DNA of 64,000 nucleotides from Pavona decussata (Eukaryota). The notes beneath the pieces were generated by a model, which saw only the letters and a program-made list of their open reading frames with translations, was not told the origin of the DNA and ran no database searches. The position numbers and the translations under genes were made by a program. The stretch is from the NCBI GenBank assembly GCA_977016875.1, contig CDRNST010000062.1, positions 4,216,001 to 4,280,000 on the forward strand. Reading direction: 5' to 3'. Each line of letters starts with the position of its first letter. The stretch's first letter is position 1. Below are positions 29,301 through 64,000 of this stretch, in pieces.

Positions 29301-31995
29301 GTACAAACATAGGAACCGATATTGTTAACACAATTGGCTTTGGGGTGACAAACTGCAGGAGAAGCGCTACATTCATCAATGTCTGACGAAACACAATAGT
29401 AACAGAAACTGAGTTAGTTTTTAGGTTCCTACACAATAAGCAAAGAAACAAATTTGCCAGGCTTTTTTTTAACTATGTGCTGACAGAAAACATCACGATT
29501 TGAGTTGGGGAACCTGTTACATGTGTTTTCTTTTCTCTCGTAGTCTGTTTACAGGATTTCGTTCTTTTAACCTTATAGAAGAATGAAAGTAACTTTCTCT
29601 TGTTGATTAAGACACAGTCCATTATTAGTAGTAATAAATGAGCTACGATCGCAGTTTAGTTCGGATATCCGTAACTGCGATTGTCTCATTTATTAATTGT
29701 TTAATCCACAGTTCAAGTATATGAACTGCATACACTCTACTTGCATCCGGCTTCATTTCAACAGGTATGATAGGAATTCACAAAATGACCAGCTCCCAGT
29801 TGGCTTGATAGCTCAGTTGGTAGAGATGGTGTGTCGTTATCACAGAGGTCATGGGTTCGAATCCTTTTCAACCCTGAAGTTTAAGAGGTTGTCGTATTTT
29901 AATTGCTTAAGTTGGGTATACAACTTCGATGGTCATTCACGTCTCAATTCTTTCATTCACAGTTCAACTTGTATATGACTTTCATATTCACAGAAGCCTA
30001 TTGCCCAGCTCACATAAATGCATTATTTTTGAGTTCCGTTTTCATTTTCCGCCCAATTTGGAGAATGGAAACGATTGAACGCGAGGTCTTCTGATTAGAA
30101 TTTACTGAAAATGCATTTATTTGCAATAAGAAAACAACTTTTTCAATGCCGTTATTTGAAGCATGGTTAATGTAAAGACCGAAAAATTTTACTCAGCTCT
30201 TGTTTCCTGATCGCTAGTCAAGGGGAACGAAGACTTTGGGTACGAGATTGGCATCGACACTTGCATCCTTTTCTTGTTACGTGGACTACTTGACAACGAT
30301 GATTCGTTTAGTCAAGGCCTTCTGTACGTGATCAAAATGGCTGTGCGATGCAATTTTGAATCCGAAGGCAAGACTTCGTCACTTCGTTGTTATTGCCTTT
30401 ACATAAACAAGCGCATGTGCAAATGCATGATGGGTAAAGTACGATCAAAGATGGCAGCTTTTACCACAATGCCTTGCAAGCCGATCACAGCTTATAGGCT
30501 GCTTCCCGACCAACAACATTGTGTATGCTAAGTTTGAAGATTTTGGAACTTTTCTGTGCGTTTTAATGAGCTTTTATAGTGTTTTTGTACGCTAAGAACT
30601 ATGGGTAAAAATATGAGCCGCCATGTTTTTTGGTACAGCAGATTATCATCACCTACGTTCAACTTTCTATGCCTCATGCTACACGCTTAACGTCCGGCTC
30701 CCTGCATTTTGATCCTCGCTTCATTTGCGCATTCTTTGCACTCACTCTACCCGCGCAACAGCCCAGTTAGCTTATAGAATCAAATCTGTGACCAGTCTTT
30801 TACACACCTTCGGTTGCCATGTTACAGTCAGCGAGGACATTCGTTCCTGGTATGATGGAGTAGAACCAGTATTTGCCACTGACAGCTTGTCCTCCTTCAT
30901 TCGCTTTTATTTCTTTGCAAGACTTGGCCGGCAGCTTAGAGATGGAGCCGAGAGGAACTGTGAAGATGAAGCCATTTAACAAAGTTAGCTTATTCTGAGT
31001 AGGAATATACATAGCTGTGGTGCTGTTTGTTATGTTATGAAGGTGTGCTTATTTTTGGGTCTGTGGATGAAATCCTATAAAGTGTGACCATTCAAATGAA
31101 AACTTCTGAGTAGTACGTTCCTGTGGTGCTGTTAATTATGCTGTATAAGGTGGTTCTAACTTTTGAGTCAATGGATGAAATTCTAAAGTGTGACCATTCA
31201 AATGAAAGCTATTGAGCAGTACTTTTCTGTGGTGCTGTTTATTAGGCTATACAAGCTCACATGGTTCTAACTTTTGATTCAATGGATGAAATCCTAACGT
31301 GTGACCATTCAAATGAAAGCTACCGAGCAGTACGTTCCTGTGGTGCTGTTTATTATGCTGTACAAGCTAAGGTGGTTCTAACTTTTGAGTCAATGGATGA
31401 AATCCTAAAGTGTGACCCGTTCAAATGAAAGCTACTGAGTAGTACTTTCCTGTGGTGCTGTTTATTATGCTGTACAAGGTAGTTCAAATATTTGAGTCTG
31501 TGGATGAAATTCAAAAGTGTGACCATTCAAATGAAAGTTACTGAGTAATACTTTCCTGTGGTGCTGTTTATTATGCTGTATAAGGTGGCTCGAATATCTC
31601 AGTCTGTGGACGAAATCGCGGTTATTATTGAAATAAAAAAGAAAAAACATCCAAACATAACTTTAACTCATACCTCTCCTGACATCAAGCTTGACGTAAT
31701 ATCGATCAGGGTCCTTAACAAAATTATCTGGACTCGCTTCCTTCGTGCGGTTGTTCCATTCACACACACTCTCCGAAACCACGAAGTTAAAACTTTGACA
31801 GACGTCTTCTTCTCTGCATACGAACAGACATTCAGCATGGCCAGATGGTGCATAGCGCTTGTTATAAGTGTGTCCCTGTAACTTCATGCCGGAGATTGGC
31901 AGCTGACGGGGTCCATTGCACTGCTCAGCAGTTGAGGCTTTGTGAACCAGGCCAGTTACAGCGATCGCGAGGATGATTGGTGTAAACGCGGCCAT
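26351..31995 (-). CDS. Secreted PAN/apple + SCKEIK module + 2 Ca-binding EGF + TLDc protein (copy B, 431 aa)
   Basis: Exons 31995-31674, 30957-30808, 29382-29260, 28630-28502, 27314-27063 and 26670-26351; all introns GT-AG phase 1; 1296 nt open. Signal peptide [23 protein letters not shown]; PAN cysteines; DIDEC/DINEC EGFs; TLDc motifs WRASSHGW...[16 protein letters not shown]...IFGGYT, AFIYSL, GPAFGRG, IEVF. Confidence 0.88.
27348..27988. mobile_element. Kolobok-like MITE in gene B intron 4
   Basis: TIR GGTGATTCC/GGAATCACC with TTAA/TGAA flanks; gene A has the empty GGTTAAGT site at ~7310. Confidence 0.8.
31015..31620. repeat. ~107-bp minisatellite in intron 1 of gene B (5-6 units)
   Basis: Units start near 31017, 31124, 31229, 31340, 31452 and 31558. 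Confidence 0.85.
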
Positions 31996-39600: not shown

Positions 39601-41031
39601 ATCCAGGCGGAACGGCGAAAATCCAATTTTTTTAGGACCTTCTATGTTGCACCATCGAAAGACCGTAGAGAATTACCGAATTCACTCGTCAGTGTGTGCG
39701 ACCAACATCAAGAATCTGAATCAGGCCAAGGGGTTTCATGACTGACGGAGAAGAAGCATTGATTCATGCCTGGCCCAGGCCTGGCCCCAGTTGTTCAAAG
39801 GCCAGATAACTTTATCCTCTGGATAAGGTACTATTCGGGGTCTAAAATTTACTTCACGTTAAACGTTGTCCAAGGTTTTCGCACACTCCTAAACTAGACT
39901 GTGGTTAGAGTGGGCATATTTGCTTGTACACGATGAAATACCGAAATCTTTGCACAGATTGAAACTGTCGGATAGTGACTTATCCACCGGATAAAGTTAT
40001 CCGGCCTTTGAACAACTGCGGCCTGGAGTGCAGACATGCCTAAGGCAAAACACCTACGCTGCTTCAAACACTTTGAGGGTAATTGTAAAGAGAAACTAAG
40101 GAAGATAAGTATCTGCAGCGCAAAAGACCAGAAAAAGTTTCTCAACAAGGTGTTTGGAGTCTACGGAAAGGAAGAAGTGATCCTAGATGCAGAGGATAAA
40201 AAAGACCTTAAGAGACGACTGTACGTATGCGTCGAAGGAAGAGCTAGAAAGAGAGGAAAGAGAAGTGCTTGGGTAGGACAGCACATACCAATGCAAGTTC
40301 TGGACATACCTCGAATCAAACTACGAGATGATGAAGAAAAACATGGTTGCAAAGGTTCGACGCCAGGGTGGGTTGAAAGACGGTCCTGATGGCAAACCAA
40401 TCAGATCGTACACAAACCCTTCAGAATCCATGAATCACGTAATGTCTGCAGCGAAGAAGGATGTTGTTTCAAGTAAAAACGAGAAAGAATATGGTTTGAC
40501 CAAGCTTGAATTCACCACTTCCGTGTTCGAAGAAATTTACCAGAAGCAGCAAGATTAATTACGTTTGGCCATCGCTGGAATAAGCGAAGAGTACGAACTT
40601 TCGGAGTTAGTGTCTCACCTTGAGGTCTCGATAGACACGTGGTTTCGCTGGTCAACCGAAGAAAGGGAGAAGTACGTCGCGGACATGAATAAATTGTCAG
40701 TGGAAGACGCACTGGGTAGGAAATCCATTCGTGAACCTGATATAACAAAACAGCCACCAGCGAAAGAATTCACCGAGTTGTCCATAGATGTAGCCCAATT
40801 TCTGAAGCAAAATATGGGATACAAGTTGGTCACAGCAAAGGCATGTCGCGGAAAACGCCCGACTTTTAGTAAACCACCCACTTGCCATCCAGGAGCAACC
40901 AACCTTGCAACCTTCTTTATTTTTCAACCTTCTTTATTTTTCTTTTTCCTTTTTTTTTTTTTTTGTTCTTTTTAATTTTCGAGGACTTATTTGTAAATCA
41001 CTTATTAGTGAAATTGATTTCCTCAATAAAG

Positions 41032-43729: not shown

Positions 43730-46598
43730 AGTATCAGTCAATCGAGCAGTTATGTTTTCGTTGTCCAATTTTCTTGAATCCGAGGTAATGCACCTGAGAT
43801 ATACTTGCCGGAGAAGTTCAAAGGCCTTTCTGTTTCATCAATTGCGTGACACTCAAAATGCTAAGCCCTAAAACAGTCACGACCTTCGAGAAGGCTCTTG
43901 GCCAATATTAAACTTGAGTCGGTGGCAATAAACATGCCTATACATAAAATAAGTCACAGTTTTTAATTAAGAGTTTCTCGGAAAAAAAAGAAAACGATGT
44001 CTTGTGGATCAGGAGGTCGACTAAACTAACTAACAACTCATGATCATGTAGCCAGATCTAGAGCCGTTATGTTTCATGAACAAAGGGTTGACTTTGGCAG
44101 TGAAATTGGTGCTGTGAAGCTAATTTCAGCATGTTGATTTATCTGTCTTAGTTTGGAATATTGAATAACTTGGGGCGTGTTTTTGTGATCAAACTGAGTC
44201 AGCTCTTTTATTGTTTTCCTGTTTTTCCGGGAAATGTCCGTTAAAATCTGTGATGTGGGCACGTTTTCACCCGCTCTAATTAACCTTGGCTAGGGCCTCC
44301 TCGAAGGTTGGAATTGAAAAAAAAATACTTTTAAGTATTTTTTTTTCAATACGTAGTTATTTTAATTTCCTTTCCCCCTTGCATACACAGACTGAGGGGA
44401 CTGGCTAGGGAGATGTACACCTCCCCCACTAATGAGCACATGGAGTACTTGACTACAAATATTTTAGGGATTAAAGAGGTCGGATCAGAATTTTGGAGTG
44501 TCAGGCACACTGGTAAAGCAAATAGGCCTGAGACAACTTTTTTTGAGACAGTATATCTCAGGTGCATTACCTCGGATTCAAGAGAATTGGACCGCGAAAA
44601 TATAACTGCCTGATAGACTGATAGATTGTTTGACATCACGTGATCAGTAGAGCAACAACTATAAAGAGTTGTAAGATATTTTAAGCGTAATGGCAATACC
44701 GGGCGCAGTTTGCTAGGCTAGAACTTGGAAACAAAACTCAAACTCGTTGGGGATAAGACTTTGGTTATTTTTCATCAGATTTTTCATGGCCTACAAACTT
44801 ACAATAATACAAGAAAAAAAGGCTCAGTTGAACAAATAAGTAAAAAATTATACAGGAAGAAGATTGCGGATTGATTCCTTGATTTGCTGACAAAGAAGGA
44901 GGGTTACATAACACACCTCTGTTGTCGTACTGCGTACGACAACATTTGGCTAAACCGCTCGCTATATCGTGATTTTCAAGCCTATTACGGGATTCTCACA
45001 CGATGGTGATCTATGTTTATAAAGATTCAAAGTTCAAATGACGAACCTAAGACTTCTTCTGGCAATCAACACACCCTTACCCTCTATCACAAATAACTGA
45101 TTCATTTAGCCATGTGAAGCTCTGCGCAGAAGATCAAATTCCTAATTAGACATCATTCGAATTCAGAGATTTTCAGAAGCGCCAGGAAAGCTGAAACTCT
45201 GAAATCTTTGATAACTACCATAAAAAAATATTTAACTTTCTCTGTATACAAACAGCCTGATTGCAAAATAATTTTATGACAGAATTGACTTTAAGGAAAG
45301 TCAATAGTTTGTGTTAATTTTTTGTTGTTGCACAATCGACTTTGTTTTTTTTTTTTTAGCGGTTCCTTTAAATCATTTTGGAAACACTGACAGGTGGTAG
45401 TGACAAGTTTTTTTCTCTCTAATTGTCAAAAGTCTGTTTTACGGAAAATACAGACTTTTAACACCGCACAAGGCTTGGTCAACTGTCTACGATTCTTCAA
45501 ACAGGGGTCATTGATTCATTGGCAGCTACAGAACTCCTTTGAGCACATGCGGTATTGTTTTTGAACGTGCTTTAAGACTTTATATGGCTAATTAAGTATC
45601 TTCACAATACTTAATTGGCCATAGCACGTTCAAACACATTCCTAACGGCTGCCTGTAACCCAATACCGCTTGCACTCAAACGTTATCGTCCCACTAGTAA
45701 TAAATCATTACAAGCACTCCAGTGACGCTAGCTTGGTTTGACTGTGATTCAGCTATGAACGAAGGACAGGTCTGCACGCAGACAGACAACCCGTATAGCT
45801 GGTATATGAAACCAGGCGTCACCGTCTTGCACTAAGTGCTTTAAAAGAACACTTGAAGGTTTCAGGATCAAATACAATGTTCAAGCAAAGGAGCGCTTTT
45901 AGAATGCTCCTACCTTTTCCAGCCAAAACATTTGAATATTTTAATGTTATATCAGTTGAGTTTGTTGTCCTTGCTGTTCAATTTTATATAGCTATATTAT
46001 AGAAAATAAACTTGTTGCGTTTGGTTTGCGTGGTTTCTCATCTTCATATATTCATATGTTATTACTTAGCTATAGCGATAACTTGTTTATAGAATACTCG
46101 ACAGTGAAATAAAGAGGCCTGTTGGCAGCCTTGTATAGAACGGAGTAGTAAAACAGTGAAATATCTGGCTTTTACAAAATTTATTAACAGCTGACACAAA
46201 ACGCTGTGTAATACAAGGCTTGTTATTACATCTTGCAACTACAGAAAAGCTTCAGATTTCAATACAATCTCCCGATTAATTGGCCTTTCTCTTCAGACTC
46301 AGTCTTACAGTCATTTTGTTTACACTGCGGGACATCATAAACAGCGGGCATAGCACTGGGTTCACCCTCCATTATTAGTACAAATTTGGTGGCACTTGCC
46401 GGCTAATCTTTCTATGCATTTCTGGTCATTAACTTCATTTCTACCTTTACAAATACCACAACCATGTCTTGATGCCATCATGCTTGGGTCCGGTAAAAGA
46501 ACCAAATCAAAATATTCTGGTAAGAGTTAAGCCGGCGTCAGTCTCCACATTCATTTAAGTATAAGCAGGTTTGGTGATTAAAGGCGTAACTTTCGAAT
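43730..46598 (+). repeat. Diverged direct duplicate of about 54672-58458 (includes the distal msrA 3' UTR)
   Basis: Colinear matches (43760 vs 54705, 44400 vs 55345, 45900 vs 57728, 46500 vs 58361) with a large deletion near 44710. Confidence 0.9.
46298..46355 (-). promoter_or_regulatory. Degenerate duplicate SECIS (core and helix II kept, 3' arm of helix I deleted)
   Basis: Near-identical to 58162-58219, but lacks the 27 nt between the CTCAGT direct repeats seen at 58135-58167. Confidence 0.7.
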
Positions 46599-48096: not shown

Positions 48097-51000
48097 TCAC
48101 AAGATCTTGAAATCTCTGAAGTAAATCACGTTCTTGTAACCATTGGCAACCAAAACACCACCACGTCGTTTGATTGGATAACGTGGATTGAATGACGTCA
48201 CCAAGTTGCCTTTCAAGTACACCCTCACTTCCCCTGCTGGGGTAGCAGTTGAGACTGTCACCTTTACGTTGAACCATTCTGCTCCCCTTGGGGGACCGGC
48301 CGGGCAGGTAGCTGACTTAGCTCCGTCAAATTTGGGTTGGCCTTTGTAAACGTAACCCGTTTGAAAGCATCCGCTGGCTGAGTGAAGCCTGTAAAATAAA
48401 AATAGGAACAGCGATATCTGTTGAAAGTTAAACTGACAGCTTACTGGTTAGGTGTACAAGTCTATCATAAATTCATGAAGAGGTTGCGGGAACTCTTATT
48501 TTATTTTTCCGAGTTTGCCTGCTTCACTGTAACTCGGATGATTTGTACTCGTCGGAAAAAAATCCAAAAAGGGGCCGGGAGGGGCGGTACAAAAAATACC
48601 ATTTCCCACCCCAAATTTTGCTCATATCTCAGCTTCCAGCACAAATTATGCCTCACATTTCATTCCCGGTTCATAAATTTAATAATCAAATTCCATTCCC
48701 AATACATCTGATCAAATCCCTTCAACACTCTAAAAAAGGAAAAGTTATCCACCTTTCTTTTCACCACCATTTAAAAAAAATTAAGACTTCATTACAAACC
48801 TGAAATAGACGAAATCATAGTTGTCTTCATCTTCCACGTTAAAGAACACTCCCGGATGTCCGTAGTTGACTCCATCGTGTCCAATGAAGTTAAACAAATC
48901 AACCGAGAGCACATAACTTGTACTTGTGTCATCATTTAAGAACGCAACCTGACAGAAGGCATCCTGTGGCCATCTTCCATGGTCGGCATCCATTTTGACA
49001 TAACCGGGGAGCTCAACCACCTACACAGAAAAACATGATAACTGATCGTTTGTCTCACGTTTCGACTGCTATACTGCTGGTCTTCATTGCCTGATGAATT
49101 AAAAAGACCAGCAGTATAGCGGTCGAAACGTCGCGATCCACATCTATGTGCCTCAATCGGGAGACAAACGATTAACTCAGCTATCATTTAAAACCACGAT
49201 GACGAACACTTTTCATAATATTAACCAGAAAAACATATATACAGGTCTGCAGGGATTCACTCTTTTTATGGCATTAAAATACATTTCAAAAGCAAGTTAT
49301 AGTGAACGCAGTTTTCCTCCACGTTCCTTGTTTTATGAACAAGCGACACATTTGACCTTCTGTATCATTGCATGAGGTATAGTAACGTTAAACGCCTTGG
49401 TACTTTCAATTGGAACATTAGCGATTCGCCACAACCTCGCCAGAAGGGACGCTTGAATACAATTGAAAGGCTTTACAGTATGGTGGCGCTTTAAAAAAAA
49501 CAGCTGTTATTTGGGAGCTAAATCGAATCATTATGATACACATTTCGAACAAGTCATGACGTTACCTGCTTGCACCTCTTGCTGACGGAAACTTGAGGGG
49601 CAATTTGGAACTTCCTGAAGAGGATCACGTTTTGGTAACCATGGAAAGTGAATACGCCTCCCCGAGCTCTCAGAGCAAAATGGGACGTGATAGTCGCCAC
49701 CAGGACTCCACTGTGATAAATTTGCGCGGTTTGACCGTGGACTTTAACTGAGACTGGGAACCAGACACCGCCTTTCGGGGGACCATTGGGGCAGGCCTTA
49801 CTCTCAACAAAGTGCAAACTTCCACCGGCCATGTATCCGGTCTGATAACAACTGGGTGCACTGTGGGGCCTAAACAGTTTCAATAGACACACGAGTTAAA
49901 GTTAGCCACACTATAAAGCAGCTACCGACCTAGCAATTTATGTGTTGAATATCAGAATGTCAGCTTGACGAGCAACTCAATCAATTACGTTTTATCTCGA
50001 TCAGTCGTTTTTTCAAGTTCGGTAATGAAAATGGAGGCAATCAATCATTAATCGGTCAGCCTGTCTGTCAGCCAGCTGGTCATCAGTCATTCATTTGGGT
50101 CATCGTTCAGTCAGTCAGTCACTCAGTCAGTCAGTCAAGCTATCGTCAGTCTGTCAGTCAGCCCTTCAATCAGGATATCGTCAGTCCTGTCAGTCAGCTG
50201 GTCGGTCAAACTATCGTCAGTTTGTCAGTCAGCCCTTCAATCAAGCTATCGTCAGTCTGTCAGTCAGCCGGTCGGTCAAGCTATCGTCAGTCTGTCAGTC
50301 AGCCGGACGGTCAAGCTATCGTCAGTTCTGTCAGTCAGCTGGTCATCAGTTACTCCGTTTGGTCATCAATCAGTCAGTCAGTCAGTCAGTCAGTCAGTCA
50401 GTCAGTCGGCCGGTCAGTCAGGTGATCATCAATCTGTCAGTCAGCTGGTCATCATTAAGTCAGTTTAATAGTCAACTTCAATCACTCAGCCGGCGGTCGT
50501 CAGCCAGTCATTCAGCTGGTAATCAGTTAGTCCGTCAGTTAGTCACCCGGTCATCTTATCAGCCACATAACTAGTCTGTCAGTGAATTAATTGACCTATT
50601 AATGGAGGGGGGGGGGGGGGGGAGGATAAATGAGACATTTGAGTTGCACAATAAGTCTTGGTCAAAATGGGCCAACCTGGTTCCTGAAATATCAGTAAAA
50701 AGAGGATCAAATTCCCCGATCCTGGGACGGCTATTACTCTGAACAGTGAGGTAATGTTACTAATCCAAAAGCAACAACAACCTTTAAGAAGAAATGTCTC
50801 TTAATGACATGCCATTAACATTTGGCAACATTTGGTATTTTAACGTTTTTAAAACCGAAATGAACTCATGCTACCTGCAGTCTGACATTCGTATAATAAT
50901 CAATATCAGCAGAGTTAACATTATTGTCGATCCAGAAACAACTGAACAATTATCAGACGAGATCATGGACTCTTTCTTATCTTCAGTTGCTGTAGGAGCC

Positions 51001-52552
51001 AATTCATGATTGGAATCCATCCGCTAAGTGCGTTTATATCAGAAGTGGTATATTAGTCCTTTGGGCTATCAGAACACTGACCGAGTGCAAATGAAGGTTT
51101 TTTTTTCTTATTATCGTTTCAGGTTTGGCTCTCTTCAACAGCACTCGGACAATTATCTTTCTCCTCTTTCTTCCTTTGTTGTATTATTAGTTCTCTAAAG
51201 ATGAGTTATCATCTTTCAAAGAGCCGTCTTGAATACGAAATTCGGCCTCAGTCCTTCTCAGAATAGAAAAACACATTACCCTGGGCCCAGAGTCTCAGTC
51301 AAATTTCCAAGGGTTAGGATGGCAAATGTCCCAAGTATACCCCAGCCACCCCTCCCCACTTCCTCGGGCTTGACCTTAATAGTTGCATATTGGACATTGT
51401 ATCAATAAATTAATCCATTCAGCTATTAATCAATCATTTATTAAATCTAACTAATCAATTAATGAATCAGTTTAGAAAGGACAAGGGGAAAATGGCAAAT
51501 GTACCTGAAGTAAACAAAATCGAAGTTGTTTTCATCAACAGCGTTGAACAGTAATCCAAGATGTCCGCTGTTTACTCCCTGCCATCCCGCTTGGTTTAAG
51601 AGCTCCGCTGACACAGTATACGCCTGCGATTCATCAATGGGCTGAGCAACCGTGCGACACATTAGTCGAGTGTTTGAGCCGAGAGCATCCATTTTGTAGT
51701 GGTTGTCTGGAATGGACTTTACCAGGCTCGTGCATTGTGCTACAGCGGTGACAGAGAACTTGCTGCCGTCTTTTAAAGAGAAATTAATGAGAAAAAATAA
51801 GATTTTTATATAACACTTTCTGAGTATGAATAGAGGATAATGGAGGATTCGAAGTAAACGTTAGCGATGTGGCAAAAGGTTAGAAGTTAACGGTTAATTA
51901 GAATAAGGGCTACAAAGTAAGATCAGCGCTACAGGTTCGGTAATGTTAAAGTTTAATAAACGTTTTCGTTTACACCAGGGACAGCGGAGGGGGAGGGGCT
52001 GGGGGGGCTTTAGCCCCCCCACTTTTTGGATGGTTAAAAAAAATATATTATCAGAAAAAAATATCTTTCACTTATTGAAACAACTTACCCTACATATTGG
52101 TATTAAGTATATAAAGGGTTTCTTCGACAAACCCGATAATATCAGACAGTTTGTCGTTATTTTTGCGCTGAACGGACGCCACTATATTCCAACACGGAAA
52201 TAATGGAATTCAGCTGTTGCTTCTATTTTCTTTCGTTCTTGGATCGGTGTTTCACGAATATAAAGTTTCATCACTAAATAAGTTAGAGGGAGTTTTTGCA
52301 GAAAGGCATTCATTTATGAAAGCTACTTATCGCCTTTACAGTACGCGTAAATGTTTGAAACGGATAATTATGTACATCTACGGTCACCGAGGTCCCTAAA
52401 ACTGATTCAACATCGAGCGCGTGTAGACATTTTCCTTTTCTTAAAACGCACATATGAAACAAACTAGTCAAATACCTAAGAAAAGAGTTTCCTCTTTCTG
52501 GTTATTGCGCTATCGTTCTTTGTATTCAAACTATTCAAAAAGACGGGGTTTT

Positions 52553-52627
<75 letters not shown>

Positions 52628-54289
52628 TTATTTTTTACTTTCTCCTGCTTCACTTAGACAGGGAAAATTTCGTTGGGGGTCAACATGTTATACCAAACTT
52701 GGGCACAGTCCTGTTTATGATTGTTGCTTGGATATGCATGAAGATTTGAAATCGTTTAATATTTTTTCTCGGGGATGGGGGGGGGGGGGGGAAATTCCAT
52801 CCATTCAGCGCCTTCTCCCCCTTTCCTACCACCCCTATTGGTCTTATTAGGGTTAAAGAGGTCACCTTACGTTAAATGTCGCGTAAAGTATGTGACTGTT
52901 AAAATTCCTGGGATCTACTAAGAAGCCATGACACTTCTTTCATGATTATTATCCGTGAAATCAAACTTACTTTTTTTAATTTGTCATGAAGTGTGAGTTC
53001 TGTAGAACTAACACTTGAGTTTGAATTACGGCACATCATGTTGGCCAAGCCAACAGGTGTTTGACAATTAGAAAGAAAAAAGTTGTCACTACCGCTCCCT
53101 GTGTTTCCAAAATGATTTTAAGGAATCAGCAAAAAACAAAGTCGATCAACAACAAAAATTAAGACAAACTATTGACTTTCCTTAAGTCAATTCTGTCAGC
53201 TTGGGTAATTTTGTCTTCAAATTATCTTGCAATCAGGCTGACCGAGAAAGTTCAATATGTTTTTTATGGTAGTTATCTGAGATTTTTATAGTTACAGCTT
53301 CCCTGGCGTCTCTGTAAATCTCTTAAGAAGAATGATGTCTAATTAGGAATTTGATCTTCCGCGCAGAGCTTTACATGACGACTTTATTTGTGATATTGGG
53401 CAAGAGAGTGTTGAGTGCGAAAAGAAGTCTTAGGTTTCTCATTTGAACTTTGAATTTTCAGAACAATAGATCACCATCGTGTGAGAAACCCGAGATATGC
53501 AGGAAAATCACGATTTCACGAGCCTTTTAGCCAAATGTTGGCGTACGCAGTAAAAATACTCATTTTCATACTTGACGTAGATCCTTTAAAAGAGGTGTGT
53601 TCTTTAGCTCTCCTTCTCTTTCAAAAAATTCAGAGCGATCAAGGAATCAATCCGCCTCCATCCCCATCTTCTGCCTGTGCAGAAGACTAATATCTGTGAA
53701 TAAATCCTTCTTGAACGCGAAACTGATACTTCCCGTGGGATGAGCGCCGTCTGCATCACCTGATACATCTGATCACCCTTGCTCTCTTAACTTAATCTGT
53801 GACGCACATTGTTTTTGCCATATAGTCTATTTAGTATTCCATTGAGAACAAAGAAAAGTTAAATTTGAACTTAAATTTTGTTAGCTCAGGAAAGGTGTTG
53901 AGAACAATTACTCTTTTATCGTCGTCTTAAGTTCTTAAAGTGATTCAGTGTCTTTGAATAGTGCTACAGAAGTCTTCTGCGCACAGCAAATTGTTCAATT
54001 TTACCAATCTCGCGAAAGACACGATTAACACCGACAGTAGTTTTCGCTTTGAGAATCAAGCCTTACTGAAGATTCGACGTTACGTACCTTCAGTGCAGCG
54101 ACCACCACCAAGAATTGCACTGTGTGCTTTCACTTTCTTCTCCAACCGAGCCTGTCTTTGTCGGATGTTATCCAGCACTCCACAAACGCTCCTAAGCGTA
54201 CACTGTTGCTGGCGTGACGCATTACCTATTACTCCGTTAACAATCACCACCAAAAAGGTGCACACGACAAAGAAAACGAAGTTTTGCAT
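48097..54289 (-). CDS. Secreted protein: signal peptide, short coiled coil, two tandem ConA-like/DUF1080-like beta-sandwich repeats (427 aa), lectin-like
   Basis: Exons 54289-54088, 51769-51505, 49869-49566, 49020-48800 and 48388-48097; phases 1,2,0,2; 1284 nt open. Repeat motifs GH(L/P)G.FN..DE.N(F/Y)DFVYFR, C(Y/F)QTGY, GPP(K/R)G..WF.V.V.V, GY.NVI.FR.F.I. AATAAA at 47883-47878. The fold assignment is inference. Confidence 0.82.
50040..50585. repeat. Degenerate (CAGT)n-derived low-complexity tract in intron 2 of the lectin-like gene
   Basis: Seen directly. Confidence 0.9.
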
Positions 54290-57073
54290 GTTCTCCGCGC
54301 ACAAGATCTGTTTCCGAGCGAATGAACAGTTAAGTCATCCGACACGCCTTTTAATCCCCAGATGACAGTGATATCAGACTCCTTTGTTTTATGCTCCAAT
54401 CAGATACCAGCTCAGGTTCTGATTTGATGAAAGGCGCTGAGAAGTCTCCTTTCTTGAAAGCGATTTGTTCCGTGTTCGACCTTAAGTGCGAAACTACGTG
54501 GTTTGTTACAACATCCGGTTTTTTTTTTGTTATTGATTTCGTACCAGAAGGTTTTGACATTTTTTTTTCCGGCTTGAAAATATCAGTTTAATGTTACAAA
54601 TCCACTAAGGCAATAACGCTTAGCTCACATGCAACTCTTAGCTTGTTGCTCCGTCACATGATGTCAAACAATCTATCAGTCTATCAAGCAGTTATATTTT
54701 CGCAGTCCAATTTTCTTGAATCCGAGGTAATGCACCTGAGATATACTTGCCGGAGAAGTTCAAAGGCCTTTCTGTTTCATCAATTCCGTGACACTCAAAA
54801 TGCTAAGTCGCTCTCTGTATCCCTAAAACAGTCACGACCTTCGAGAAGGCCCTCGGCCAATATTAATCTTGAGTCGGTGGCAAACATGCCTATACATAAC
54901 ATAAGTCACAGTTTTTAATTAAGAGTTTCTCGGAAAAATAAGAAAACGAAGTCTTGTGGATCAGGAGGTCGACTAAACTAACTAACGACTCATGATCATG
55001 ATGTAGCCAGAGCCGTTATGTTTCATGAACAAAGGGTTGACTTTGGCAGTGGAATTGGTGCTGTGAAGCTAATTTTAGCATGTTGATTTATGTCTTAGTT
55101 TGCCGAATATTGAATAACTTGGGGCGTGTTTTTGTGATCAAACTGAGTCAGCTCGTTTTTAGTTTCCTGTTTTTCCGGGAAATGTCATTAAAATCTGTGA
55201 TATGGGCACGTTTTTACCCGCTCTTTAACCTTGGCTAGGGCCTCCTCGAAGGTTGGAATTGAAAATAAATGCTTAAACATTTCATTAACTTACCTAGTTG
55301 TTTTTTAAAATCTTCTTTTCCCCCTGCATACGCAGACTGAGGGGACTGGCTAGGGAGATGTACACCTCCCCCACTAATGAGCACATGGAGTACTTGACTA
55401 CAAATATTTTAGGGATTAAAGAGGTCGGATCAGAATTTTGGAGTGTCAGGCACACTGGTAAAGCAAATAGGCCTTAGACAACTTTTTTTGAGAGTATATC
55501 TCAGGTGCATTACCTCGGATTCAAGAGAATTGGACAGCGAAAATATAACTGCCTGATAGACTGATAGATTGTTTGACATCAAGTGACCAGTAGAGCAACA
55601 AGCTATAAAGAGTTGGAAGCTGAGCGTGATGACAATATGTGGTGCTGTTACATTAAACTGATATTTTCAAGCCGGAAAATGAAATACTTCGTTTTCAGTA
55701 ATCATTGAGTCTCTCTCTTGATTCTCAAAGCGAAAACTACGGTCGGTATTAATTGTGTCCGTTTTGTGAGATTGTTTTTGTGCACAGTTGGAGAAGACTT
55801 TTGTAGAACTGTTCAAAGACACTGAATCACTTAATGAACTCAAGAGGACGATAAAAGTGTTCTCAACAACTTTCCTGAGCTAATAAAATTTAAGTTCAAA
55901 TTAAACTTTTCTTTGTTCTCAATGGAATACTAAATAGACTATACAGCAAAAACAATGTGCGTCACAGATTAAGTTAAGAGAGCAAGCGTGATCAGATGTA
56001 TTAGGTGATACAGATGGCGCTAATCCCATGGGAAGTATCAGCTTCACGTTTAATCCTGTTTAGGTCCACGTTTAGATATTCAACTGTAGTGTCAACGTTA
56101 AAACAAAGGATTGTGCATGGCCGCGGCCCTTCCAACATAAAATGCAGCACCATTGTAATTAACTTTGAACATGACAAGGTTTAATTCATAACCAATCCCT
56201 CAATTAACTATGATGCCAACTTTCCTCGGCTAGAACTTGGAAACAAAACGCAAACTCGTTGGGGCTAAGACTTTGCCTATTTTTCATCAGATTTTTCATG
56301 GCCTACAAACTTACAGTAATAAATCACAAACGAGGCATTAAAAACTTTAACATAGGTCAGGGCCGAACAAAAAGGCTCAGTAGGAAAAATAAGTACAAAA
56401 TTACACTGGACGAAGATGGCGGTTTAATTCTTTGATCGCTCTGGATTTTCTGACTAAGAAGGCCGGAGAAGTAAAGAACAGACCTCTTTAAAAGGATCTA
56501 CGCTAAAGTATGAAAATGATCGAGTATTTTTTTACTGCGTACACCAACATTTGATGAAAAGGTTCTTGATGTCGTGATTTTTCTGCGTATCTCGGGATGG
56601 GCCGGATTTTCGCACGATGGTGATCTTTTATTCTAAAGATTCAAAGTTCAAATGAGAGGGGGAACCTAAGCCGTCTTCTCGCAGTCAACACACCCTTACC
56701 CTCTGTACTCTCTATCACAAATAAAATTCATTTACCATGTAAAGCTCTGCGCGGAAGATCAGATTCCTATAATTAGACTTCATTCTAATCATAACTATGT
56801 TCTAAATCAGAGATTTACAGAGACGCAAGGAAAGCTGTGACTTTGAAATCAATCTTTGATAACAACCATAAAAAAATATTTAACTTTCTCGGTCAGCCTG
56901 ATTGCAAAATAATTTGAAGACATAATTAAAAAGCTGACAGAATTGGCGAAGGAAAGTCAATAGTTTGTGTTAATTTTTGTTGTTGATCGACTTTGTTTTT
57001 TACTGATTCCTTAAAATCATTTTGGAAACACTGACAGGTGGTATTGACAAGTTTTGTTCTTTCTAATTGTCAA
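53060..57073. repeat. Large imperfect inverted repeat (arms ~53060-54830 and ~55403-57073, spacer ~570 bp)
   Basis: 53061-53185 is the reverse complement of ~56950-57073; 53720-54070 of ~55700-56045; 54565-54830 of ~55403-55680. Confidence 0.88.
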
Positions 57074-57350
57074 AAGTCTGTTTTACGGAAAACACAAATA
57101 TTTAACGCCGCACAAGGCTTGGTCAACTGTCTACCATAATTCAAACGGGGGTCATTGGCAGCTACAGAACTCACACTTTCATGACAAATTTTGAGTACAT
57201 GCGGTGTAGTGTTTTTCGGCCGTTGAGAATTGGAACGTGTCACAAGTCTTTGTATGGCTGATAAAGTATTGTTAAGTCTTACGACGCGTTTAAATTGCCA
57301 ACGGCTGCCTGTACACCAATACCGCTTGCACTCAAAGGTCATCGTCCACC

Positions 57351-57417
57351 TAGCCTGCGAGTAAGCTCTCTTGGGGGTAGGGGGCCTCCACCCCCAAGAG
57401 AGCTTGCTCGCAGGCTA
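57351..57417. mobile_element. Short palindromic TA-flanked MITE
   Basis: TAGCCTGCGAGTAAGCTCTCTTGGGG...CCCCAAGAGAGCTTGCTCGCAGGCTA; absent from the duplicate at ~45690. Confidence 0.75.
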
Positions 57418-58139
57418 CGTCCCACCAGTAATTAATCACAAGCTCTCTAATGACGCGAGCTTGGGTTCCCTGTAGTTCAGCTATGGCCTGCGAGCAAGCT
57501 CTCGGGGAAGAGGTGGGGGAGGGAGTGAGAAGGAGAGAGACAAGCTCTCTTCTTCCCTCCCCCTCTCGCCCCACCAACCCGTATATAAAACAAGGCGTCA
57601 CTGTCTCGCACCAGGTGCTTTAAAAGAACACTTGAAGATTTCAGGATCAAGTACAATGCCCAAAAAAAGAACGTTACAAAAAGTGTTTCGTTTAAACTGA
57701 AACATCTTTGAATACTCGAGCGCTTTTAGAATGCTCTTGCGTTTTCCAGCCAAAACATATGAATATTTTCCCTGTTATATCAGTTGAGTTTGTTGTCGTT
57801 ACTGTTTAATTTTATATAGCTTCATTATAGAAAATAAACTTGTTGCGTTTAGTTTGCATGGTCTCTCCTCTTTATATATTTATATGTTTGCACTTAGCCA
57901 TAGCAATAACTTGTTTATAGAATACACGACAGTGATATAAAGAGGCCTGTTGGCAGCCTTGAGTATAGAACGGAGTAGTAAAACAGTGAAACCTCTGGCT
58001 TTTACCAAATTTATTAACAGCTGACACAAAATGCTGTGTTACACAAGGCTTGCTATTACATCTTACAACTCAGTTACAGAAATGCTTTAGATTTCAATAA
58101 TGAATCTCCCAATTAACTATCCTTTCTCTTCAGACTCAG

Positions 58140-58219
58140 TGCTACCCCAATGTGTTAGTTTCTCAGTCTTACAGTCATTTTGTTTACACTGCGGGACATC
58201 ATAAACAGTGGGCATAGCA
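58140..58219 (-). promoter_or_regulatory. SECIS element in the inferred msrA 3' UTR
   Basis: Minus strand reads TGCTATGCCCACTGTTT-ATGAT-GTCCCGCAGT-GTAAACAAAATG-ACTGTAAGAC-TGAG-AAACTAACACATTGGGGTAGCA. It has the AUGA/GA core, helix II with 8 of 10 pairs, AAA 12 nt after the core, and an extended helix I. AATAAA follows at 58015-58010. Confidence 0.85.
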
Positions 58220-58471
58220 TGGGTTCACCTTCCATTATTAGTGCAAATTTGTTGGCACTTGCCTAATCTTTCTATGCATTTCTGGTCATTAACTACATTT
58301 TTACCCATTACAAATACCATAACCATGTCTTGATGCCATCATGCTTCGGTCCGGTAAAAGAACCAAATTTAAATATTCTGGTAAGAGTTAAGCTGGCATC
58401 AGTCTGCACATTCATTTAAGTGTAAGAAGGTTTGTTGAACAAAGGCGTAACTTTAGAACACTAGTTATTAA

Positions 58472-58734
58472 CTCTTCAAGCCCTAACAGTGATCAGCATC
58501 AAATTTCTCCTAGTAATATCAATGCTTACTCAAGCCCCGGCTTAGCCTGCGTGTCAGGCGCTAGAAAGGGGAAGGGAGAGGGGAAGCTAGCCCCGGCTGA
58601 GGTCATGAGAATTAAGGATATGATCATCAAAGTGAATTTTCTTGATATTTTCATAACTTCTCCCTAGTACTTTTATAAGAAAAGTATGGGGACAAGATAG
58701 GAGAATTTGTTTTTTCGTATTAGGGGTTAAAGTG
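58472..58734. mobile_element. TTAA-flanked (piggyBac-like) MITE with a small nested insert (10-bp duplication AGCCCCGGCT)
   Basis: TTAA-CTCTTCAAGCCCTAA...TTAGGGGTTAAAGTG-TTAA. Confidence 0.65.
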
Positions 58735-58795
58735 TTAAACTAAGTGAAGATATGGATTAAGCACCTCGCACCTACTCTCATGACCTGTTTCTTAA

Positions 58796-59161
58796 AGGGG
58801 CACTGTCACGGCGATTTTGCTGTATATTTGTGAAAACTGCTCAAAAATTTGACTAAGAACCTCTTTTCTAACAGGAAATTAACCTTAGAGCACCGGGACG
58901 AAATATGAAATGATTTCTCAAAAGAAGAACAAACTACAATCGGTTATTACAGCCATTTTTCCAAAATACTTCTAAGAAGAAATTTGAAGTTTCAATCCAT
59001 TTCCATCCAAGCCATCTGCAGCCAAAGATGAATGAGACTAGCTTCTATGTACAAGAGGGTTTGTATTTAACAAAACTGAACAGTTATTTTAACTTTTACA
59101 TCAATGCAAAAATGTCTTTTGGCTATTCAAAGTGACACTGAAAATAAGTGACATTACCCCT
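58796..59161. mobile_element. Kolobok-like MITE
   Basis: TTAA-AGGGGCACTGTCAC...GTGACATTACCCCT-TTAA. Confidence 0.78.
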
Positions 59162-59197
59162 TTAAGCCTAATTTACATGTGCCAATTTATTGTCCTG

Positions 59198-59883
59198 GCC
59201 CCAGTTGTTCAAAGAGCGGGTAACTTCATCCACTGGATAAGTCGCTATCCAGCGGAGCAAATGTACTCTAACCAATGCTTTTGGCAAGTTAACCACACAA
59301 TCCCATTCTTAAATTTGACATATGCTTCTACTCTATCCACAAATTATCCCGGGGGGGGGGGGGGTACTCCCTAATATGGGCTATATAGGTATGTGCGGCG
59401 CCAAAGAGTATGGTTTTTCAGCCGCTTTGGTCATAAATAGGGTATCGATTTTAGCCATTTTGCCGCCATTTTGGTAATAAATAGGGTATCATATTTTGCA
59501 CTCTAGTCTTGAATTCTTTTTTTTTTTTTTGAAGAAGCTACTTCTTCATCATGATGTTTACAGCAACTGTGTACGTGCCGCAACGGCTTGTCATGCGCTC
59601 CGGTCACGCACTGGACTCCAGGGGTTCTTGAACTGGTTATAAATAGGGTATCAAATTTTTGGTCAGGTCATAAATAGGGTAGGGAAAATCGCAGAGTTTG
59701 GTCATAAATAGGGTAAGGGTTTTGGGAAGCGGGCCGCACACCCCTATCCAATTTTTTTGGGAGTACCCCCCCCCCCCCCCCAGGGAAATTATAGGGCTAT
59801 TGGGAAAATCTTGCACACATTTTATCTGCCGGATAGCGAACTATGCAGTGGATAAAATTATCCGCCCTTTGAACAACTGGGGC
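59198..59883. mobile_element. Harbinger-like MITE containing a nested poly-G/poly-C-ended MITE (59348-59785)
   Basis: Outer TIR GCCCCAGTTGTTCAAA with CTG TSD; inner CCC(G)nTACTCCC...GGGAGTA(C)nAGGG with AAATTAT duplicated. Confidence 0.85.
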
Positions 59884-60106
59884 CTGATAAGTTGGTTACA
59901 TTTCTTGGGCCAAGTTACACGTTACAATTTGTTGGCTGAATTTGTTTTCTGCTGGTGTAGTGCAGAATGAAAATCAACATTATTCAAAACAACTTCAATT
60001 GCTTACTCATGTTCAGAACAATCAGCAAACTTACAAAGTCACGAAAATGCTCTAACTAAAAAAAATTGAATCAAATGGTTTGATTTTGTTTAACTGATAA
60101 TTCCAT

Positions 60107-63100
60107 TTAGAATTGACTCTTGTTACTTATGATCTTTCGCACCATATCAGCCTGTGGTTCTGTAATTTTCAGCTCATCAACTTCGGCCTCAAACTGCTTT
60201 ACTGAGCCATGACCTCCAACATAGCCATTTAAGCGAGCAGCCACAGACGAGTTCATCAACTCCACACTGTTTAATCCAAGACTCCTCAGCAGAATGGGTT
60301 GCTGACGCAGCAAATACTTTTGGTGATAACTGAAAAGCAACAGACCATTACATGTAACTTGAGGTAAGCTTACTGATAATGTGAAGTCAATTTGTATGAT
60401 GTCATCACTTCAGTAGTCCCCTGGCAAATGCCAGCAGCATATCTGGGGGGAGGGGAGAGTGCGGCACAGATCTCCTACAGTGTACTTATCATCAGACAAA
60501 ACAAGGTCTGGAGAGCAAAATATTTTTCCATTCTAGCTGAAACATTTTCACTCCAGGCCCACATGCCTCTACTTTACACAATGTCCTGGACCTGCCATTG
60601 AACTATGCACACCATTATGAGCCATGCTGGAGTTCTCTTTCCCACAGTGTAGGAAATAATCTAAAGTCTTCTTAAAATTAAAATTGGTAAAAAGGGGCTT
60701 AAAACTGATCTAAAAAACTTAAAAAGTTTCCCCAAATTTTCGAACCGTATCTCTGGTTCTTCTTCGCGGGACAAGAACCAGAACCGGAAATAAGGTTCGA
60801 AAATTTGGGAAACTGTTTAATTTTTTTAGATCAGTTTTAAGCCTCTTTTAACCAATTTTAATCATGAACACTGATTGCCAAAAAAACGTCTTCTTAAAAG
60901 CCTGACATAAAATCCACCATCTTGACCACATAACAGAATAATAGATTCGGTAAGAGAAACAAAGAGAGCATAACAGAAAAATTTAGGTTAATTAAGTCAA
61001 CATTAAAAATTTTTGAAGTACATACTCCTCTGCATCGTAAAATCTTTTTGCTGGAAGAATCTTTGTCACTATGGGTCTCCTAAGGGTCTTCTGATGTTCA
61101 TCACAAGTCTGCTCTGCAAGCTGTTTTTGTTCATCGTCATGGTAGAAAATCGCTGACATATATTGTGCTTTGTGGCTAGTTGTAGGATCATGATTTTTCC
61201 AAAACATGGCTAACAGATCACCGTATGTTGTACGGTTTGGATCATATTCCAGCTGAACAGTCTCTGTATGGTTCCCGCTGTAAAATGTAGAGAAAAAAAT
61301 GGAATGACAAAAATTCTAAACACCAAAAATACATTGCCTATGTGTTTAAACATATCTTCCAACTACAGTACCACTGTACACACAAATTTAAAATGTTGGC
61401 CACAAACAACTACATGCTGGTTTCTATGTGGGTTGTTTACAACTGAACATTAAAAAAACACATAAAAATATTACAACTAAATATAAATGAAGGCAACACA
61501 TTTGAAATTACAGCACATGAATAATCACTGTACCACAAAGGATACACTACTATTATAATCCGTGCCAATTTCTGTTGGGAATCTGGTCTGGTTAGAAAAC
61601 AAGCCTGGTATAGCAAAATTTGCCTTGCCATCGATTTGGCAAGCTTAGCCTATTCTTTCAGATTGCTCCAGAGCAAACCACCACTAAATTGAAAACTGCA
61701 TATTGAGGAAAATTTGTATTAGGCTTTGGAATTGCATGAAAGCTAAATGTGTCTTCCTGTATCTGAGTTAGTATTTTTTCCCCACAATCACTGACTTTAA
61801 GGATCAGGTTTCTCAAGTACCGTAAGGAGCATGTTGATTGTTTACAATTTTATACTTTAGAATTGACTTAGCTCTCATACGCCTTGAGTCAAAGGATAGC
61901 TGTTGTAGTTCATTCAAAAATATCTTTGCTCCAGATACAGTATAACATTACTCCAGCTGCTCTAGACTGATATTTTTGTAACTTGTCTTTCTAGACCTTA
62001 TCAGGTCTCACCTGGCTCCAGGCTAACGTTTGAGCTCAGTATCCCAGTGACTACTGTGACAGGTCTGGTTTTGCTACATGTAGGCTGTCTAGCCAAAACA
62101 AAATTTTCACTAGCAACAGTTTCACTATTTCATTTCATGAAAAGGGGAGAGAGAGGGAACTCAGACACTTTTTATTAGATGTGAAATAATTATTAAGAAC
62201 AAATCTCCCTCACTTGTAAAAGTTTTGTTACTGTTTACAAATTGCATTATTTGTGACTGAAATTTCAAATTGACCTTAACATGAAAAAGCCTACCTATAC
62301 AGCAAAAAAAGCAGCCAAAAAAGGTAAATTGATATCTAGGAAAAATGTGGCTTATTTGAGCTTATTTGAGCTCGATTAAAGTTTTAGTTTCATTAACAAT
62401 CTGTACATGAATTTTAATGTTTGAATGGTAATGGAGTCAAATCAATAATTTTTAAAATTACCAGTCTGTGGTGCTACCCGGTTACCAGTAGTCTCGGCCC
62501 TAGGTATTCCAGAGAGGGGTGCAATAGTTAAAATAACTAGTGTTACAGAGTGCTCACTATACAAAATAGACATCTATAGATGGTCAGTGAGGAAAATTTA
62601 GATTTTATCTCTTGCACAGTTTGGGTATGTACTCCCAGGGGGGGTACTCGGGTGTATTAGTGACGGGGAGGTGCGAATGAGGCCAAATTTTGAAACCCAA
62701 AAAAAGTCCCGTCACGCTAAGGAAAACCCAAAAAAAGTCCAGCAGCCAAAAACGTAACCCAAAAAAAGTCTGATACAAGATGATGGATCGTTAACAAATA
62801 AACCACTATAACTTAACGAGAGTTGTCTTTGTCTTGTCATTTTATTTGCATGATTTAAACTTGTTAGTGAAATCGTTTTGCGTAAAATCAAGAATGGTAG
62901 GGCACAATTTTCATCAACCCCAAAAAAAGTCCTCGCCAAAATCTTAAGGGCAAAGAAAGTCCAGCAGAAAATTTCAAACCCCAAAAAAGTCCCAAGCCGA
63001 GAATTTCAAACCCAAAAAAGGTCTTCGCACGTCCCCGTCACTAATATACCCGAGTACCCCCCCTGGGTATGTACTTCCAGATTACCATCTGTTAAAATGG

Positions 63101-63880
63101 TTATGTCACTACAGGAACTGTCTAGTCATCTTTCATCAAGAAAAGCTAACATTAATTTATACGTTTTGAATAAAAAAAACTCCAGTATAACAATGATTCA
63201 GCATTTCCTATGAACCCCCACCCCTGACCCCCCACCTAGGAACACAATCGCTTGACTCAACAAATTATATTGTTGAAAGCAAAATTCCACAGCAGTTTAT
63301 CAGCTACTAATAAAATATTACGGTATAAGCATAAAAATCCTAGCCAGTGATCTTTCTTAGTATGCTAGCTTGCATACTTAACTAGCAGATACTGTATAAA
63401 CTAAGCACTGTACGACTGAAAAAAGCTCAACTTACATCTTCAAAATTATTAAGGAAAATCATGCTATTATTAGTATTTGAACCAGACTTTTATAAAGGTC
63501 ACAAATGTAGGGCCGTGTATTCCACAGTTAATCTCAAATATATCAAGGGCGACTAAAAGTCAACAGACAGCGCAAAAGCAGGCTAACTGAAGTCCTCCTC
63601 TTCCACGATGTTCTGTAACACGGTCAAAACTCCCAGATTTCGCATGGAATTTCATGTCAAATACAGGAATTAAGACAAAAAAAAAGTCCAAAACACTTCA
63701 CTATTAAATTCTTTGTCCTCCATTAACAACTTACAGGCTGGTGTAGGTCGGAAACGGCTTGGCTCCGCCAGTGTAGCCGACCTTAGTTCGAACGACGCCA
63801 TTAGCACATCCAAACTGAGCCTCGGGAAACCAAAATCAGCTCATAGCAAACGTGGCTGTCTTGGTTTCGACATCCGCCAT
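60107..63880 (-). CDS. msrA: Peptide methionine-S-sulfoxide reductase A, probable selenoprotein (Sec at codon 15), 206 aa
   Basis: Exons 63880-63735, 61277-61026 and 60329-60107; GT-AG introns, both phase 2; 621 nt. The translation MADVETKTATFAMS*FWFPEAQFGCANGVVRTKVGYTGG...GNHTETVQLEYDP...FWKNHDPT...QYMSAIFY...FYDAEDYHQKYL carries all MsrA motifs. TGA at 63838-63836 occupies the Cys position of GCFWG. Confidence 0.95.
60678..60861. repeat. ~180-bp imperfect palindrome in msrA intron 2
   Basis: TTAAAATTGG...CTTAAAACTGATCTAAAAAA...CCCAAATTTTCGAACC mirrored by GGTTCGAAAATTTGGG...TTTTTTAGATCAGTTTTAAG...CCAATTTTAA. Confidence 0.8.
62634..63067. mobile_element. MITE with 8-bp TSD in msrA intron 1
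   Basis: TIR CCCAGGGGGGGTACTCGGGT(G/A)TATTAGTGACGGGG; TSD TATGTACT on both sides. Confidence 0.9.
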
Positions 63881-64000
63881 GTTGTCGAGAGGTGGTTTAA
63901 CTACCTCAACAGTGCTACCTAGTGTATTGCCCGTTTTGAATGAAGAAATCGCCCGCAAAGAACGAAGAAATGTTGCTATAAATAAAGAACGAGACATCAC

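Follow-up and report, generated by a model that had tools for sequence, protein, structure and literature searches.

The msrA gene of the scleractinian coral Pavona decussata is, in all likelihood, an orthologue of the metazoan selenoprotein MsrA, in which an in-frame UGA at the catalytic position would be recoded as selenocysteine (Sec) by means of a SECIS element in the 3′UTR. A selenocysteine MsrA had already been proposed for this locus from the letters of the DNA (hereafter, the sequence-only reading). That proposal is strengthened by the conservation of the TGA codon, by the presence of Cys at the same position in Cys-type homologues, by an orthologous SECIS element and by Sec machinery encoded in the genome, and from these sequence comparisons we infer that the gene is expressed and Sec inserted in P. 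decussata. Sec-containing MsrA is not new as a type: Jiang et al. (2012, PMC3473315) reported it as widespread in marine invertebrates, Nematostella having two such genes, and the P. decussata gene is its orthologue in another scleractinian. Species carrying this form include Nematostella, Amphimedon, Trichoplax, Capitella and Branchiostoma (PMC3473315) as well as Strigamia, Daphnia and Ixodes (PMC4244043). Chipman et al. (2014, PMC4244043) inferred the Sec form to be the ancestral one of animals, which insects and vertebrates would have replaced by Cys independently of each other.

The gene lies on the minus strand of the analysed window (the whole 64-kb stretch of DNA) and consists of three exons, which run from 63997 or 63880, depending on the start codon, to 60107. 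Exon coordinates were read from the sequence. The coding part of exon 1 (63735-63997), for which aligned mRNA contigs were also used, is followed by the donor CT/GTAAGT after 63735, and the 5′UTR extends beyond the end of the window. Exon 2 (61026-61277), flanked by the acceptor ttttacag and the donor GA/GTATGT, encodes the catalytic core of the PMSR domain (PF01625) and holds the motifs GNHTE and QYMSAIFYH together with the Cys of EQTCDE. Exon 3 (60107-60329), preceded by the acceptor ttttcag, completes the motif AEDYHQKYL, encodes the C-terminal helical domain (PF20939), contains no cysteine and ends with the stop codon TAA at 60109-60107. Joining the exons restores TYTSL-GNHTE and AED-YHQKYL. 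The same structure is seen in spliced transcripts: the mRNA contig of a close relative (L021) aligns to 63856-63735, then from 61277 and then from 60328, and a second contig (L012) has the same exon junctions. In a six-frame Pfam search of the 602-Mb assembly, PMSR (PF01625) matched a single locus, and the two pieces of this match both lie in the window.

The reverse complement of 63880-63735 reads MADVETKTATFAMS, followed by TGA and then by FWFPEAQFGCANGVVRTKVGYTGGAKPFPTYTS. This TGA, the putative selenocysteine codon (63836-63838, minus strand), is in frame within exon 1, and the mechanical list of open reading frames of the window breaks off at it. According to the sequence-only reading, codon 15 counted from the ATG at 63880 is a TGA at the catalytic position, the start context, VGYTGG motif and splice sites are intact, C25 and the Cys of EQTCDE are the only other cysteines, and C-terminal resolving cysteines are missing. 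All of this was recovered when the sequence was read again: the start context is cgacaacATGG, the remaining motifs are as described, exon 3 is devoid of Cys, and the TGA aligns opposite residue 16 of the Clostridium oremlandii enzyme (CoMsrA).

The alignment to CoMsrA comes from searches in which the three exons were used one by one, so that both domain and structure matches rest on unjoined pieces. Exon 2 matched PF01625 with 82.5 bits, and the piece of exon 1 following the TGA matched PMSR with 27.5 bits starting from profile position 9 (cut-off of 23.7 in both cases). Exon 3 matched PF20939, the 'Selenoprotein MsrA helical domain', with 76 bits and an E-value of 1.9e-21, over profile positions 1-50 of 51. 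All three pieces also match PDB chains 4LWJ-4LWM, 4U66 and 4W8C, which represent CoMsrA, natively a 1-Cys selenoprotein whose active site needs the C-terminal helical domain to form (PMC4333827, PMC4479559). CoMsrA chains are the best structural match for exons 1 and 3; exon 2 scores slightly higher against plant MsrA (2J89). The post-TGA piece aligns to residues 17-47 of the CoMsrA chains, and since it begins at residue 17, the TGA falls opposite catalytic residue 16. Exon 3 aligns to residues 136-206 of 4LWJ/4LWK. The active-site residues Tyr47, Glu55, His137 and Tyr140 of CoMsrA are identical in the aligned coral exons, and Tyr90 most likely has its counterpart in the Tyr conserved within QY(M)S.

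One genome sequence alone cannot tell a stop codon from a Sec codon, and the TGA might thus have arisen by nonsense mutation or by faulty assembly, in which case the locus would be a pseudogene or misread. Comparison with other species makes this explanation extremely improbable. The identical codon, in the context (T/K)ATFAMS-TGA-FWFPEAQFGC, is present in the genomes of two other corals, Porites evermanni (L009) and Pocillopora verrucosa (L010), and in five mRNA contigs, three from corals (L011, L012, L021) and two further ones, L022 and the non-coral L008. In the alignment of orthologues TGA is kept in every coral sequence examined; the contigs of the closest relative (L004-L007, 97% identical) cover exon 2 only. 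Moreover, the coding sequence is conserved among orthologues on both sides of the TGA, splice sites and the downstream frame are intact, and the SECIS element described below is conserved as well. Finally, this is the sole msrA locus of the genome, and a dead gene would therefore leave the animal without MsrA.

Wider homologues were gathered by a profile-free search with exon 2, and many of them are N-terminally truncated. Among those spanning the site, 34 show a W at this codon in the gene caller's output, read as TGA and confirmed as such in one of them (L022). The second class comprises 43 sequences with Cys and one outlier with Asn, mostly featuring GCFWG or a near variant. Residues adjacent to the nucleophile covary with it, TGA forms having (M/L)(S/A)-U-FWFPE and Cys forms (M/L/A)G-C-FWG/S/A. 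The SUFWF motif had been considered atypical; however, FWFPE or FWFPD occurs in 33 of the 34 TGA (printed W) forms, which makes it a signature of the Sec form instead. The two classes also differ at the position ten residues past the nucleophile, where a Cys is found in 22 of 34 TGA forms (65%) but in only 4 of 44 Cys forms (9%). The NCBI 'partial' models of Amphimedon, Acanthaster, Lytechinus and Nematostella start at the TGA codon or within one residue of it, and share FWFPEAQFGC with the coral. Judging by these alignments, MsrA shows the exchange of Cys and Sec by which selenoprotein families are defined.

Public gene models of corals show what becomes of such a codon in automated annotation. 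Exon 1 is missing from the models of Porites evermanni, Pocillopora verrucosa, Montipora capricornis and Acropora, and P0236, P0238, P0269, P0272 and P0273 begin in intron 1 or at an internal Met, so that the truncation anticipated by the sequence-only reading has indeed taken place in at least four other coral genera; for the Montipora protein P0269, the underlying contig was looked for and not found. Taken at face value, models beginning in or after intron 1 or at an internal Met would speak for translation that starts past the TGA, with exon 1 untranslated and the protein lacking its catalytic residue. We consider this very improbable. The N-termini of these models are intron-derived and differ between species. 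Exon 1 is conserved in its amino acids before as well as after the TGA, a conservation that takes in 39 further residues upstream (see below), and in L009 and L010, the two genomes examined, it lies intact ~1.0-1.2 kb ahead of the point where the annotated model starts. In addition, splicing of exon 1 onto exon 2 keeps the frame in transcript contigs. A PMSR domain deprived of the first strand and the nucleophile would have no activity, and removing parts of CoMsrA is known to destroy the active site (PMC4333827).

Conservation of exon 1 extends upstream of the ATG at 63880-63878. Another ATG, at 63997-63995 (minus strand), three bases from the window edge, is in frame with it, with no stop in between, and conserved. 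The 39-residue extension starting from 63997 is basic and Ser/Leu-rich, with no acidic residue in its first half, and is conserved in P. evermanni (L009), P. verrucosa (L010) and the mRNA contig L011, where KTGNTLG and V-K/R-PP are shared. Based on this conservation and composition, translation of msrA probably starts at 63997 and not at the internal ATG, and the long form of the protein probably carries a mitochondrial presequence. Thus, the ATG at 63880 is as the sequence-only reading described it, but it is not the likely start, and the putative Sec becomes residue 54 instead of 15. The internal ATG might be the source of a second, cytosolic isoform.

The second component expected of a eukaryotic selenoprotein gene, a SECIS candidate, is located at 58130-58228 (minus strand). 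A first strict, ungapped scan for SECIS gave no match. A relaxed, energy-based scan for AUGA, unpaired AA and GA with flanking helices did list a candidate with its core at 58202, behind several others that had no AUGA core or no unpaired AA. In the predicted structure, helix I is formed by 58218-58209 pairing with 58149-58141 and helix II by 58197-58188 pairing with 58175-58166. The core AUGA is at 58202-58199, the AAA of the apical loop at 58185-58183 and the 3′ core GA at 58164-58163. The consensus accordingly consists of helix I, an internal loop with UUUAUGA, helix II of ~10 positions, an apical loop with AAA, GA and the return strand of helix I. The element has some oddities: helix II has a 2x2 internal loop, its core is flanked by a U.U, and AAA follows AUGA at a distance of 13 nt compared with 12 nt in the Rfam consensus. 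Its fold energy alone is no better than that of shuffled sequences (z 0.11). Thermodynamics is therefore unsupportive, and the case for a SECIS element derives from homology and covariation.

Comparison of the window with P. evermanni revealed a single conserved block outside the exons, 58217-58160, corresponding to positions 7801-7857 of L009. Homologues of the element are also present in the genome of P. verrucosa (L010, 7902-8007) and in L012 (1065-1170) and L021 (1374-1472), two mRNA contigs that carry the coding sequence of msrA too. Using three other corals, with the window left out, we built a covariance model (R1), which matched 58228-58130 (minus strand) with 36.8 bits and an E-value of 5.4e-7; this was the sole significant match on both strands of the 64 kb. 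Over five sequences, 90% of cells form pairs, with compensatory double changes in five of the pairs. A covariation score as high arose in 11 of 500 shuffles, and pairing fell to 32-45% once the partners were slid. It is thus well supported by comparative sequence analysis that 58228-58130 represents an orthologous SECIS element in the predicted msrA 3′UTR. In one coral mRNA contig (L011) no SECIS was found in the short 3′UTR, probably because the contig ends early.

The Rfam model SECIS_1 detected nothing in the whole window or in its segments at 56-64 kb, 59.1-60.15 kb and 58.05-58.3 kb, the last of these being a 251-nt stretch around the element that was searched with E<=10. The same model found nothing on the coral mRNA contigs L012 and L021 or in the 7.5-9.5 kb region of P. 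verrucosa. Since SECIS_1 also misses the elements of L012 and L021, we take the negative result to reflect low sensitivity of the model and not absence of the element. A sub-threshold SECIS_1 match (24.2 bits) was obtained in the non-coral mRNA L008, at the equivalent place in the 3′UTR.

Failure of SECIS_1 to recognise the hairpin, along with its location in a region (56.2-58.5 kb) that belongs to a segmental duplication, would fit a scenario where the hairpin at 58.2 kb has another function and the UGA is read as Trp or another standard residue, or else ends a short peptide. A number of observations render this scenario very unlikely as well. The hallmarks of SECIS appear in the proper order (helix I, AUGA, a helix of ~10 bp, unpaired AAA, GA, helix I), and the hairpin and the TGA-bearing coding sequence reside on the same mRNAs. 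The non-coral orthologue (L008) has its SECIS_1 match in the equivalent place. As for Trp, the alternative residue in homologues is Cys and not Trp. The favoured reading, UGA decoded as Sec with the help of the 3′UTR hairpin, also agrees with the Sec machinery found in the genome, for which tRNA-Sec and SepSecS were searched. There are three tRNA-Sec genes with a TCA anticodon (75-78 bits, with ARAGORN in agreement) and a multi-exon SepSecS gene.

The predicted msrA 3′UTR is ~2.1 kb long (57990-60106, minus strand), its end being placed by the AATAAA alone. This polyadenylation signal, read from the sequence at 58010-58015 (minus strand), lies ~115 nt past the SECIS element and is presumed to be used. 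The distance between the stop codon and SECIS is ~1.9 kb here and ~0.4-0.9 kb in relatives (~780 nt in L021). This long gap, with a repeat inside it, counts against the SECIS assignment, since a P. decussata transcript would have to run across it unbroken. The 3′UTR of L021 aligns to 60106-60020 and then again to 58259-58115. Most of the surplus distance, ~725 nt, is accounted for by a MITE-like repeat at 59162-59886, the ends of which match other copies in the window. These ends recur at 3241-3488, 39780-40027 and 9956-10076, in both orientations; the element itself has inverted ends and poly-G/poly-C tracts.

Repeats are also found around the gene. A segmental duplication of 56221-58458 is present at 44709-46597 (70-82% identity), 12 kb away, and contains a truncated copy of SECIS (46299-46337, minus strand). 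The copy has the core and helix II (covariance model E-value of 0.36), but ~22 nt are missing from the 3′ arm of helix I; with no accompanying msrA coding sequence, it is probably a dead copy. A ~650-nt stretch close behind the 3′ end of msrA occurs in the window in three copies with ~80% identity (56418-57082, 53656-53052 in inverted orientation, and 44709-45697) and overlaps the neighbouring gene at 48097-54289. Intron 2 includes a long, near-perfect inverted repeat (60668-60863, minus strand), to which the plant microRNA models MIR821 and MIR841 gave 72 and 53 bits, far below gathering. Most likely it is a small palindromic transposon and not a miRNA. GC-rich palindromic hairpins at 57350-57418 and 57500-57583 likewise drew sub-threshold matches from numerous miRNA models, unrelated to each other, on either strand. 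Two matches to the tRNA model on the plus strand, 9390-9463 (29.2 bits) and 29802-29875 (32.7 bits), are barely above Rfam gathering and may represent tRNA-derived repeats rather than functional tRNA genes.

By analogy with the C. oremlandii enzyme, Sec would be the catalytic nucleophile, forming a selenenic acid upon its attack on methionine-S-sulfoxide. The active site would be held together by the helical domain, which would place the His and Tyr of YHQKY facing the FW of the motif around the nucleophile. Regeneration would presumably proceed without a C-terminal resolving Cys, using a reductant of the glutaredoxin/glutathione or thioredoxin type. The conserved Cys ten residues past Sec possibly takes part in this step: its occurrence in 22 of the TGA forms as against 4 of the Cys forms makes a two-residue mechanism possible. 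A more specific proposal, which we put forward tentatively and regard as less probable than its negation, is that animal Sec-MsrAs are not true 1-Cys enzymes, the Cys of FG-C at +10 resolving the intermediate via a selenenylsulfide, and that the upstream ATG gives rise to dual mitochondrial and cytosolic isoforms. If true, the combination of Cys +10 with S-U-FWF-P would mean a way of recycling distinct from both CoMsrA and the classical MsrAs with C-terminal Cys.

Viewed against known systems, the coral gene differs in nothing essential from metazoan Sec-MsrAs, having the same catalytic in-frame UGA, SECIS in the 3′UTR and combination of PMSR and helical domains; its local features are the repeat-expanded 3′UTR and the partial duplicate of the SECIS segment. 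With MsrA of Clostridium (Alkaliphilus) oremlandii it shares the equivalent of Sec at residue 16, FW-x-P-[DE]-AQFG after the nucleophile, Tyr47, Glu55, His137 and Tyr140 (probably also Tyr90), the PF20939 domain and the lack of a C-terminal resolving Cys. By contrast, CoMsrA has a bacterial SECIS beside the UGA, GUFWG and no other Cys, whereas the coral has SUFWF, Cys +10, the exon-2 Cys, a SECIS of eukaryotic type in the 3′UTR, introns and the probable presequence. MsrA of Chlamydomonas reinhardtii, a eukaryotic Sec enzyme of the family, is likened here by its description only (PMC4244043, PMC9404770). Cys-type MsrAs of vertebrates and insects (e.g. Aedes albopictus P0248) have the same fold and align throughout, and those of insects also combine PF01625 with PF20939. 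They differ in having GCFWG with Cys in place of SUFWF with Sec, and having Cys, they need no SECIS.

Useful outcomes of the analysis are the SECIS model specific to corals, the upstream start codon and the proof that exon 1 is left out of public coral models. Because the coral element escapes Rfam SECIS_1, a lineage-specific model is needed to find SECIS in corals. In automated annotation, the sole MsrA of Pavona decussata would be called truncated or absent. Coral models that lack the catalytic exon bias both the counts of antioxidant-repair genes and estimates of selenium dependence, and such gene counts matter for studies of bleaching and oxidative stress.
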